From sequence record ON529855.1: DNA of 64,000 bases; one strand, given 5' to 3'. Positions 46,516 to 53,546 of this stretch are shown one piece after another. Both the position numbers and the translations under genes were made by a program. Under the pieces are notes generated by a model that was not told the origin of the DNA, did not search any database, and saw nothing but the letters and a program-made list of their open reading frames with translations. The stretch's first letter is position 1. The number at the start of each line of letters is the position of its first letter.

Positions 46516-46596
46516 TGGCGGGGACGGAGGGAATCGAACCCCCTGGATGACGCCTTCGGAGGGCGTTGCCTACATTCCGGTCGGCACTTCGCCCCC
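46516..46596 (-). tRNA. tRNA-Arg(CCG), atypical D arm
   Basis: GGGGGCG/CGTCCCC acceptor, ACGCC-CTCCGAA-GGCGT anticodon arm, TTCGATT loop, CCA encoded. Confidence 0.85.
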
Positions 46597-46629: not shown

Positions 46630-46711
46630 TGGCGCCCAAGGCAGGATTTGAACCTGCGTTTGCAACTCCGCTACGGATAAGGCCTTCGTAGGACCCCTCG
46701 GTTACTTGGGC
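46630..46711 (-). tRNA. atypical tRNA, probably Arg(ACG): no D arm, double-hairpin variable region
   Basis: Perfect GCCCAAG/CTTGGGC acceptor, canonical T arm, GGGTC-CTACGAA-GGCCT anticodon arm, CCA. Confidence 0.55.
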
Positions 46712-47199: not shown

Positions 47200-47274
47200 T
47201 GGCCCACCCAGGAGCGCTCGCATCTCCGTCTCGGGGATTTCACTCCCGCGCTAATCTGTCTCAGCTATGAGTGG
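47200..47274 (-). tRNA. tRNA-Phe(GAA), divergent
   Basis: CGGGA-GTGAAAT-CCCCG; CCACTCA/TGGGTGG acceptor; T loop TGCGAGC; CCA. Confidence 0.7.
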
Positions 47275-47275
47275 A

Positions 47276-47359
47276 TGGTGGGAAGGGAGAGAATTCGCAC
47301 TCTCACAGCTTGCGCGGGGGATTTACAGTCCCCTGGGCTCACTCGTGCCCAGCCTGCCC
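47276..47359 (-). tRNA. tRNA-Tyr(GTA)
   Basis: GGGGA-CTGTAAA-TCCCC; long variable arm; CCA. Confidence 0.9.
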
Positions 47360-49903: not shown

Positions 49904-50160
49904 GAGTAGGTCGCGCCCGAAGCCCGGACCACCAGGTCGGCGACGGGTTTGCCATGAGCGACGATCATTTCGTCGTAGGTGTTGATGTGGAAGCGCATCA
50001 GGGCGTTGTCGACCGTCTGCCAGGCATAGGCCTTCCAGGCGTCTCGGGCGTCTTCGCGGCGGGAGAAGGACCCCACGAAGATGATTTTGCGCGGATCGCG
50101 GAAGGCTTCCTCGCGGGGGTGGGGATGCTCGCCCCCATAGACGTAATAGGTGTCAGGCAT
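49900..50160 (-). CDS. DUF4170-family protein
   Basis: YVYGGE...F.DP..I..VGSF....A..AW...AWQTVDNALMRFHI. Confidence 0.75.
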   Translation of the reverse strand: MPDTYYVYGGEHPHPREEAFRDPRKIIFVGSFSRREDARDAWKAYAWQTVDNALMRFHINTYDEMIVAHGKPVADLVVRASGATYS

Positions 50161-50162
50161 GC

Positions 50163-51050
50163 TTACAAAGTCACGATCAGGCGGGGATTGAAGTTCGGGT
50201 TCAGTTCATGCCCGACATAGCCGCGAGGATTGCAGATCACGCGGGTCTCGCCGATCTGGTAGTCGCTGCTGTCATGCATGTGACCATGGACCCACAAGGC
50301 GGGCTCCCACTCCAACATCAGCGGCTCCAGCCGCGACGCATAGGCGGGGTTCAGCGGCGATCCCCGATAACGAGGATGGCTCGACTGCTCCGACGGCGCA
50401 TGGTGGGAGATCACCACGGTCGGGCCGTCATGAGGAACCCGCAGCGTTTCCGTCAGGAAGAAGCGGCTTTCCAGATGAAGGCGCCGCGTGTCGTCCGCCG
50501 TCAGGCGCTGCTGCTGCTTCAATTCGATCTGCCGATAGTCGTTCATGTCCGACTGGGCGTGCCGGATCGACAAGGGCCAGGTCCCATAGAGGTCGAAATC
50601 GGTCCACAGGGTGGCGCCGAGGAAACGCACGTCGCCCACATGGACCTGCTCGTTATCCATGACGAAGACGCGGGCGGGCGCCAGTTCGTCAGCCTTGGCC
50701 TTCATCTTCTCGATGTGGCGGTGGTAGCGCCGCTTGCCGTAGAACTCGTGATTGCCCGGAACATAGAGGCAGGGGACGTCAGGGAAATGCCGCGCCAGCC
50801 AGATCACGCCGACGACGCCCGTCGCCAGGTCGCCGGCGGCGATGACCACGTCGATCTCGTCAGCCGTGGGCGCCGTCCAGGTGCGACGGTCCATTCCGCC
50901 GAACTCCAGATGGAGGTCCGACAGGATCAGGGCGCGCAACGGCCGTCGTCCAGGAGTCCGCCGCGCCAGGCCGGCTTCGATGTCAGCCTGCATGTCGGCC
51001 GCAGCCGCCACAGTGAACTCCATCTCAGCCTTGCTCCACTTGGTCTCCAT
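50163..51050 (-). CDS. calcineurin-like metallophosphoesterase
   Basis: SDLHLE, AAGDL, VPGNHEFY, VISHHAP, WVHGHMH, VICNPRGY. Confidence 0.95.
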   Translation of the reverse strand: METKWSKAEMEFTVAAAADMQADIEAGLARRTPGRRPLRALILSDLHLEFGGMDRRTWTAPTADEIDVVIAAGDLATGVVGVIWLARHFPDVPCLYVPGNHEFYGKRRYHRHIEKMKAKADELAPARVFVMDNEQVHVGDVRFLGATLWTDFDLYGTWPLSIRHAQSDMNDYRQIELKQQQRLTADDTRRLHLESRFFLTETLRVPHDGPTVVISHHAPSEQSSHPRYRGSPLNPAYASRLEPLMLEWEPALWVHGHMHDSSDYQIGETRVICNPRGYVGHELNPNFNPRLIVTL

Positions 51051-51070
51051 CGTGGAGCATCCTTGAAATC

Positions 51071-51189
51071 TGGAGCGGGTGGACAGACTCGAACTGCCGC
51101 CTCCGGGTTAGCCACCCGGCGCTCCTGGGTCCACGCGAACCCCCGACGATGATTCGCGTGATCATCGTCGGCCCTAGAGCCTCACCCGC
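51071..51189 (-). ncRNA. 119-nt tRNA-like RNA with two hairpins inserted in the D loop
   Basis: GCGGGTG/CACCCGC acceptor, U73, CCA; GCTC/GAGC D stem enclosing 52 nt; CCGGG-TGGCTAA-CCCGG; GGCAG-TTCGAGT-CTGTC. Confidence 0.8.
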
Positions 51190-51426
51190 ATAAGTTGGCA
51201 GGAGTTTTCAGATATGGCGAACCATACCCAGGGCGACCCTCCTGCCAGGAACCCCCGTCTCGGTTTCTTTCACTGGCCCCGACACGAGCACCTGTCAAAG
51301 CCTATCTAGCCGCCAGGCTTGCGGAACGTCTCGGGCGATTAGGCGCCTCGGGATGAACAGCGTTGCGGACGGCGTAGCATCGGCTTGCCGTGATTACTGA
51401 CAGACGGCGCCGGTGGTGTCAACAAT

Positions 51427-51872: not shown

Positions 51873-51961
51873 TGGCGGATGGGGCAGGGATCGAACCCGC
51901 GTAACCCTCTCGGGTGTCGACCGCTTAGCAAGCGGCTGCCTTACCTCTCGGCCACCCATCC
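51873..51961 (-). tRNA. tRNA-Ser(GCT)
   Basis: GCCGC-TTGCTAA-GCGGT; long variable arm; G73; CCA. Confidence 0.95.
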
Positions 51962-52154: not shown

Positions 52155-52372
52155 TGGTGGAGGCGAGGGGATTCGAACCCCCGTAGACGCCGAACCCTCG
52201 CATTACCAAGGGCCGATCTCAGGTTTAGAACGCGTGTGCCGCCCTGACCATCTTCCGCAGGCCAGGGGGTCTATCGTAACGACCCCGTCGATCGGTTGCC
52301 TCTGCGTCCCGGATTTACCCGGACCGTTGCTCTGTTCCACGGTGCTCATGCCGAAACCCGAGCGACGCCCCC
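52155..52372 (-). ncRNA. 218-nt tRNA-like RNA with Ala-type acceptor (G3.U70, A73, CCA)
   Basis: 5' GGGGGCG pairs with 3' CGCCTCC-ACCA; T arm GGGGG-TTCGAAT-CCCCT; about 140 extra nt in several hairpins; flanked by short spacers like its tRNA neighbours. Confidence 0.75.
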
Positions 52373-53169: not shown

Positions 53170-53251
53170 TGGAGAACCCTGGTGGAGTCGAACCACTTGC
53201 GCCTGGATTAAAAGCCCAATCCCGGCCACCCGGATTTAACGCTCAAGGTCC
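53170..53251 (-). tRNA. tRNA-Lys(TTT), atypical D region
   Basis: TTGGG-CTTTTAA-TCCAG; GGACCTT/AGGGTTC acceptor; CCA. Confidence 0.75.
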
Positions 53252-53264
53252 CCTAAAGTTATGT

Positions 53265-53355
53265 TGGTGAACGTGGTCGGACTCGCACCGACGATGAAGG
53301 TTGTAACCTAACGGGATTAAGAGCCCCGGCCTCTCGCTACTGAGGTGACACGTCC
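53265..53355 (-). tRNA. tRNA-Lys(CTT) with long variable arm
   Basis: CGGGG-CTCTTAA-TCCCG; variable hairpin AGGT-TACA-ACCT; T loop TGCGAGT; CCA. Confidence 0.85.
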
Positions 53356-53390: not shown

Positions 53391-53461
53391 TGGAGCCGGC
53401 GGACGGTGTCGAACCGTCCCATGTCCACTACGAAAGGTCAGCCCTGCCACCAGGCGCCGGC
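53391..53461 (-). tRNA. tRNA-Thr(CGT), degenerate anticodon stem, mini D arm
   Basis: Perfect GCCGGCG/CGCCGGC acceptor (G1-C72, C2-G71); GACCT-TTCGTAG-TGGAC; next to Thr(GGT); CCA. Confidence 0.6.
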
Positions 53462-53467
53462 GTTGTT

Positions 53468-53538
53468 TGGTGCCAAGGGAGGGAGTCAAACCCTCGCTGA
53501 ACCCATACCAAGGGCTCGACCGATCACCCGGCCTTGGC
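53468..53538 (-). tRNA. tRNA-Thr(GGT), short D arm
   Basis: AGCCC-TTGGTAT-GGGTT; GCCAAGG/CCTTGGC acceptor; CCA. Confidence 0.8.
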
Positions 53539-53546
53539 GTTGATGT

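Follow-up and report, generated by a model that had tools for sequence, protein, structure and literature searches.

Phage tRNA arrays are usually interpreted as helpers of codon usage or as spare parts against host tRNA nucleases, and several phage or bacterial RNAs that are not ordinary decoding tRNAs share part of the tRNA architecture or lie beside tRNA genes. Canonical bacterial and phage tRNAs (Rfam RF00005) have a D loop of about 7-11 nt. The YrlA-type Y RNAs are tRNA mimics bound by Ro60 (PMC4201824); they combine a tRNA-like domain (T arm, D arm) with a stem formed by the 5' and 3' ends, some of them are cut by RNase P and given CCA, and they occur in phages including CcrColossus (PMC12135203). 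In tmRNA, the tRNA-like domain holds an acceptor, a T arm and CCA with extra structure inserted in the body. The tRNA region of phage T4 encodes RNA C and RNA D, two small stable RNAs of unknown function (PMC3014915), and the packaging RNA (pRNA) of the phi29 family is a phage RNA of about 120 nt in which two loops are complementary, "hand in hand", with a complementarity that covaries between related phages. An engineered aptamer inserted in the D loop of an E. coli tRNA was not stably expressed (PMC5397188), and a natural, conserved expansion of the D loop is therefore unexpected.

We analysed a 64,000-nt stretch (hereafter the window) of the genome of Brevundimonas jumbo phage vB_BpoS-Domovoi (ON529855.1, 352 kb, Dolichocephalovirinae), in which position 50000 corresponds to position 298000 of the record. 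An initial annotation based on the sequence alone had proposed a 119-nt tRNA at 51071-51189, with two hairpins grafted into its D loop, a Gly-type acceptor and a non-Gly anticodon loop. The observation is confirmed: it is a real, unannotated gene for a 119-nt tRNA-shaped RNA, shared by a group of large Caulobacter and Brevundimonas phages. The interpretation is only partly supported, since calling this RNA a tRNA goes beyond the evidence and a tRNA-like RNA is the safer name; it is probably not an ordinary decoding tRNA. Literature searches found no description of this RNA.

Anatomy of the element in phage Domovoi

The element is read on the minus strand, from 51189 to 51071, and every anatomical statement of the initial annotation holds. 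The parts of the element and of its surroundings are as follows.

51071..51189 (-): the tRNA-shaped RNA gene, 119 nt; 7-bp acceptor GCGGGUG/CACCCGC at 51189-51183 / 51081-75, A8 G9 at 51182-81, U73 at 51074, CCA at 51073-71
51121..51180 (-): D arm; 5' strand GCUCU 51180-76, AGGG 51175-72 (probable G18/G19 equivalents), insert 51171-51126, 3' strand GGAGC 51125-21; the stem GCUC/GAGC, to which a fifth U-G pair is possible, encloses a 52-nt loop
51143..51171 (-): hairpin H1 of the D-loop insert, CCGACGAUGAU-CACGCGA-AUCAUCGUCGG, 11 bp with a 7-nt loop
51127..51142 (-): hairpin H2 of the D-loop insert, GGGUUC-GCGU-GGACCC, 6 bp; its tip UUCGCGUG (51139-32) is complementary to the H1 tip CACGCGAA (51160-53)
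51103..51119 (-): anticodon-type arm; 5-bp stem CCGGG/CCCGG and loop UGGCUAA (51114-08), with G at position 33 and U36-A37-A38; the variable loop has 4 nt
51082..51098 (-): T arm GGCAG-UUCGAGU-CUGUC with a canonical T loop
51190..51259 (-): conserved structured 5' leader; GACGGGGGUU 51259-50, stem P1 51247-39 / 51204-196, hairpin P2 51227-12, UCUGAAAAC 51212-04, and CUUAU with U at -1 before G1
51260..51298 (-): probable promoter region, inferred from sequence comparison; TTGACA 51298-93, and TCGTGTC 51287-81, which aligns with TTCGTCT in relatives at 24-27 nt before GACGGGG
50163..51050 (-): metallophosphoesterase gene, first ORF of the conserved operon, starting 20 nt after the CCA, with the start codon in the loop of an 8-bp hairpin (51059-51032)

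The unconstrained minimum-energy fold is exactly this cloverleaf (-62.3 kcal/mol, z = -3.1), and the insert alone folds into the two hairpins (z = -4.9). Nothing is annotated at this place in any of the phage records. ARAGORN at default settings does not report the element, nor does Rfam at the gathering threshold or at E <= 10, and ARAGORN at 90% thresholds reports only a truncated 76-nt "tRNA-Ser(gct)" at 51071-51146, as the initial annotation had predicted in stating that scanners would miss or truncate it. With the insert deleted in silico, ARAGORN at default settings accepts the frame in all four phage types, so the insert is the only reason scanners miss it. This acceptance, together with the insertion at one precise site (after AGGG) in all members, could suggest that the insert is an intervening sequence removed after transcription to give an ordinary 73-nt tRNA. 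We consider this very unlikely: the 46-53-nt insert is too small for a self-splicing intron and is made of two plain hairpins, no group I or other ribozyme core and no bulge-helix-bulge is visible at its boundaries, no Rfam ribozyme or intron hit was found, no ligase or endonuclease lies nearby, and removal would not repair the drifting anticodon described below. Moreover, the selection on tip complementarity suggests that the module works in the mature RNA.

The same window holds other genes missed by standard annotation. An unannotated tmRNA-like gene lies inside the tRNA array, 1 kb upstream of the element, at 52155-52372 (-), with an alternative 5' end at 52286; its acceptor GGGGGCG/CGCCUCC carries G3.U70, with A73 and CCA, it matches Rfam tmRNA at 32 bits, below the gathering score of 47, with E about 2e-11, and it is 95-100% identical in all seven Brevundimonas phages although the flanks are about 82% identical. 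Seven further tRNA genes (46516-46593, 46630-46711, 47200-47274, 47276-47359, 53170-53244, 53265-53355 and 53391-53461, all on the minus strand; Arg-CCG, Arg-CCU, Phe, Tyr, Lys-UUU, Lys-CUU and Thr-CGU) are missing from the record and from ARAGORN at default settings but appear at 90% thresholds, all with encoded CCA, and an odd 78-nt tRNA-like sequence lies at 53468-53545.

Distribution, selection and covariation

BLAST retrieved the element in all seven B. pondensis jumbo phages, in CcrColossus and in CcrPW, always unannotated and always just upstream of a metallophosphoesterase gene. Exact-anchor scans of IMG/VR, JGI metagenomes and GTDB genomes, using the anticodon arm or the D arm with a variable gap, found only CcrColossus and CcrPW, all other hits being chance matches in coding DNA. 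More members came only by walking from phosphoesterase homologues to their contigs and searching these with a covariance model (CM) of the frame, which gave seven more clear members, on the metagenomic contigs designated here L139, L140, L141, L142, L143, L144 and L145, and one degenerate member, L146. Overall, 12 versions were found in 9 isolates and 8 metagenomic contigs, almost always at the head of a conserved operon. The element is absent from the phiCbK tRNA region and from four related operons, on contigs L147, L148, L150 and L151, so it is dispensable there.

Five closely related phages differ at 79 of 994 aligned columns around the element but at none of its 119 positions, and at only one of the 84 leader positions upstream. 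Across the 11 alignable members, 98.8% of 241 frame pair cells are paired and 15 of 22 frame pairs changed on both sides, including all five anticodon-stem pairs and five of the seven acceptor pairs. None of 500 shuffles reaches any of the five measures, and sliding the partners by one to three columns drops pairing to 39-57%. The alignment used for these counts was fitted to the structure of the model, and the eight or nine lineages all come from one phage clade, but the slid controls and an independent RNAalifold run on four sequences agree with it. The invariant or nearly invariant unpaired parts are A8-A9, AGGG after the D stem (11 of 11 versions), G26, the 4-nt variable loop, the T loop UUCGAGU (UUCRAGU as a family motif) and U73, while CCA is encoded in 10 of 11. 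Ten members have A8, U14 and G21, whereas L141 has U8, A14 and A21. This coordinated swap at the positions of the classical 8-14-21 tertiary contact, although a single evolutionary event from which the 3D contact is only inferred, argues that the RNA folds into a tRNA-like L. Two members have relaxed tRNA ends: L142 has no encoded CCA and an A1.A72 mismatch, and L146 has a degenerate acceptor and a 6-nt loop but keeps the T arm and the two complementary hairpins.

The insert always follows AGGG, next to the elbow, and in all 11 members folds on its own into two hairpins, H1 of 9-12 bp and H2 of 6-8 bp. Its sequence evolves fast: the element of Domovoi and that of the related Brevundimonas phage Kikimora share 21 of 46 insert positions (46%) against 66 of 73 in the frame, yet all 12 positionally comparable pairs are kept and six of them changed on both sides, including four of the six lower pairs of H1. 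Colossus and PW differ by two further compensatory pairs in H1, and a near-copy of the Domovoi element at L140:173-291 has five coordinated changes that keep H1 paired, together with a G3.U70 wobble in the acceptor, which is the classical alanine identity pair. A feature not seen in the initial annotation is that the tips of H1 and H2 are complementary to each other in every lineage, each time with a different sequence (H1 tip / H2 tip).

Domovoi, L140: CACGCGAA / UUCGCGUG
Kikimora: UCGGCCGA in both
Colossus type: AGCGCU(UC) in both
L142: UGCGCA in both
L145: ACGCG / CGCGU
L144: GGACGU / ACGUCC
L139: CGCGCG in both
L141: UCGCACG / CGUGCGA
L146: UGUGCG / CGCACA, in open loops

Within a molecule the match is 5-8 nt (mean 6.9), against a mean of 3.6 when H1 tips are paired with the H2 tips of other lineages, and none of 20,000 permutations of eight lineage representatives reaches the observed sum. 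In three lineages the motif is not a palindrome, so what is conserved is complementarity and not identity. A nested alternative helix using these segments costs only 0-5.6 kcal/mol over the minimum-energy fold, and a loop-loop kiss, a conformational switch and pairing between molecules therefore all remain possible.

These data contradict the view that the element is a dying tRNA pseudogene hit by a chance palindromic insertion, a view in favour of which stand its being skipped by annotators and scanners and its non-canonical anticodon loop. A random, non-covarying insertion in a pseudogene had been named beforehand as the outcome that would invalidate the proposal, and the relatives show the opposite, keeping the two hairpins through compensatory changes. 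A mobile palindromic element is also rejected, since the hairpin is present in a single copy in the window and in each genome.

Anticodon arm, operon context and possible role

While the anticodon-type stem covaries completely, the loop of the 11 members is always 7 nt and ends in an invariant U36-A37-A38, whereas its first four positions drift.

Domovoi, L140: UGGCUAA
Kikimora: UCGCUAA
Colossus, L142: UCGUUAA
PW, L143: UAGUUAA
L145: CCGUUAA
L144: UUGUUAA
L139: CUGAUAA
L141: CCAAUAA

Read canonically, these loops give GCU, GUU, GAU and AAU, which stand for three amino acids, and position 33 is G, C, A or U, being U in only 2 of 11. The alternative reading of the initial annotation, GGC after the first U of the loop acting as U33, is ruled out as a family feature because L145 and L141 begin the loop with C. 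The Gly-type acceptor is correct for this phage, and the best canonical CM matches are the phage tRNA-Gly(UCC) genes (46-47 bits), but it is not a family feature: pairs 1-72, 2-71 and 3-70 all vary and only U73 is invariant. As to an origin from one particular tRNA, CM scores favour tRNA-Gly(UCC), but the acceptor and T arm of the Colossus version equal those of tRNA-Trp.

A working, aminoacylated decoding tRNA is possible but less likely. In this view the D-loop expansion is tolerated or adds a feature, and the odd anticodon loop belongs to a habit of non-canonical loops in this phage group, possibly to evade host anticodon nucleases. The tRNA quality of the frame, the encoded CCA in 10 of 11 versions, the invariant U73, the canonical T loop and AGGG, and the perfectly canonical anticodon loops of L144 and L139 fit this view, as does the invariant U36-A37-A38, as in tRNAs that read ANN codons and as if the loop were still read or modified. 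The lack of U33 is weak evidence against decoding, since the high-scoring tRNA-Ile(GAU) and tRNA-Pro(GGG) of this phage (47031-47107 and 53547-53621, minus strand) have C33 instead of the near-universal U33 (loops UCGAUAA and UCGGGAA); C33 was also observed in relatives (L137, L007, L144, L145, L148, L150), where the C33 Ile gene sits beside a second Ile(GAU) gene with a normal U33. Our main reason to doubt a decoding role is that orthologues carry four different anticodons with no matching change of identity elements. By the established identity rules SerRS needs the long variable arm, AsnRS G73, IleRS A73 and bacterial GlyRS C35-C36; here U73 never changes, no Ser-type long arm appears, and no single synthetase fits the family. 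In addition, G33 and A33 occur, L142 and L146 have lost CCA or acceptor pairing, the instability of the engineered D-loop aptamer cited above speaks against it, and canonical tRNAs with the same anticodons sit nearby in the same genomes, for example tRNA-Ser(GCU) at 51873-51961. A search within +/-600 nt for a cis partner of the anticodon loop that covaries with it found none.

The structured leader is conserved across the clade, with the motif GACGGGGUU, a covarying stem P1 (GGCAGGAG/CUCCUGCC against GGUGG/CCACC), an inner hairpin P2 with a different sequence in each lineage, the motif UCUGAAAAC, and CUUAU. It follows a conserved TTCGTCT-N24-27 block that we take to be the promoter, by inference only, since a sigma-70 scan found nothing on this strand. 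The leader also occurs at L147:2083-2150, where the tRNA-like RNA is missing, and therefore belongs to the operon rather than to the RNA; it may be a separate regulatory 5'-UTR element. Downstream come the phosphoesterase, a DUF4170 protein, small ORFs and a peptide deformylase in nearly all relatives. The Domovoi-type phosphoesterase has a 37-residue N-terminal extension (50940-51059, minus strand) that Kikimora, Colossus and others lack, and which is probably translated, as substitutions among close phages fall mostly on third codon positions.

A functional link with the phosphoesterase is not supported. It has no solved sequence relative, its predicted structure (pLDDT 87) is closest to PptH and then to generic phosphodiesterases, with nothing from RNA repair, and only 3 of 51 distant homologue loci have tRNAs nearby. 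In an unrelated 180-kb viral contig (IMG/VR 3300009008_000005), a 31%-identical phosphoesterase gene is wedged inside an 18-gene tRNA array, with tRNA-Lys ending 27 nt before it and tRNA-Met starting 5 nt after, but no tRNA-like element of this family is present. We thus see co-transcription, itself inferred, but no evidence of a joint function, and no partner protein is identified.

The element could alternatively be mainly a cis-acting part of the operon transcript, a tRNA-shaped processing, stability or translation-control element for the phosphoesterase mRNA. It always sits between the conserved leader and the first ORF, it ends only 9-30 nt before the start codon in seven lineages, with the start codon inside a hairpin in Domovoi, and no terminator lies between them. 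This reading appears unlikely, as the spacing is 123-125 nt in the Colossus-type genomes and 572 nt, with two ORFs between, in L146, as operons in L147, L150 and L151 lack the element, and as the elaborate, covarying hairpin tips and the invariant U73-CCA are not needed for a mere RNase P site.

We favour a functional gene for a roughly 120-nt RNA derived from a tRNA, belonging to a clade of large Caulobacter and Brevundimonas siphophages (the CcrColossus / vB_BpoS group and uncultured relatives). In this model the RNA would be transcribed from the conserved promoter and leader as the first element of the phosphoesterase-DUF4170-deformylase operon, cut out by RNase P at G1, for which U at -1, the 7-bp acceptor, the canonical T arm and the U73-CCA end are all in place, and trimmed at its 3' end to the encoded CCA. 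The L-shaped body, supported by the invariant AGGG and T loop and by the co-varying 8/14/21 positions, would bear a rigid two-hairpin module protruding next to the elbow, whose tips would pair with each other or with a second molecule. Since orthologues keep neither an anticodon nor a coherent set of identity elements, we think, with a confidence of about 0.5, that it most likely works as a tRNA mimic, a stable RNA that would engage some tRNA-binding factor through its acceptor, T arm and elbow and offer the module as an extra surface, rather than as a routine decoder. The comparative data establish the reality of the gene, its structure, the purifying selection and the covariation, whereas transcription, processing into a stable RNA ending in CCA and the mimic role are inferred, the function by exclusion; the only public sequencing runs holding the sequence gave scattered low-depth contigs, probably DNA or relatives, and were uninformative on expression. 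A more speculative and rather unlikely extension is that the module is a self-recognition device, through whose covarying complementary tips the RNA either dimerises or oligomerises "hand in hand", as phi29 pRNA does, or switches between two elbow conformations, which would make it a new class of phage tRNA-mimic scaffold or regulator using the host's tRNA maturation machinery for its biogenesis.

This tRNA descendant kept the parts needed for tRNA maturation and folding, lost a fixed anticodon and gained a conserved, internally complementary structural module at the elbow, which points to a non-decoding job for a tRNA-shaped RNA in large phages and shows that standard annotation misses such genes. 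With 12 natural sequence variants, it is a compact and well-defined target for structural work and the search for partners, directly testable in the laboratory pair CcrColossus / Caulobacter crescentus.

Comparison with described RNAs

The element resembles the YrlA-type Y RNAs in being, in our preferred reading, a tRNA mimic, but its topology is opposite. In Y RNAs the acceptor is closed, the terminal stem is the Ro-binding stem with the GNCGAA(N)G motif and the gene sits beside rsr, whereas here the ends form the acceptor with CCA, no such motif lies in the terminal stem, the neighbours are the phosphoesterase, DUF4170 and deformylase genes, and no Ro60 gene is annotated in the 64-kb window; a Y RNA reading is therefore rejected. 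Compared with tmRNA, it has no G3:U70, except in the single variant L140, no tag reading frame and no RF00023 match, and its anticodon arm is intact. With the phi29-family pRNA it shares only its approximate size and the principle of covarying complementary loops; there is no sequence or CM similarity, no Rfam family matches at E <= 10, pRNA is not tRNA-shaped and these siphophages are not known to package with an RNA. It recalls the T4 RNAs C and D, which are phage-encoded stable small RNAs of roughly this size, encoded with the tRNA genes and with no known role. The closest match remains the canonical tRNA, especially the phage's own tRNA-Gly(UCC), with which it shares the 7-bp acceptor, the D stem, the 5-bp anticodon stem with a 7-nt loop, the 4-nt variable loop, the UUCGAGU T loop, U73, the encoded CCA and a location in or next to the tRNA array. 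It differs by its 52-nt D loop with two hairpins, by A8/U14 in place of U8/A14, by a position 33 that is mostly not U and by an anticodon that is not conserved among orthologues. It is thus not a member of the Rfam tRNA family by score or by D-loop size, but it clearly descends from a tRNA.
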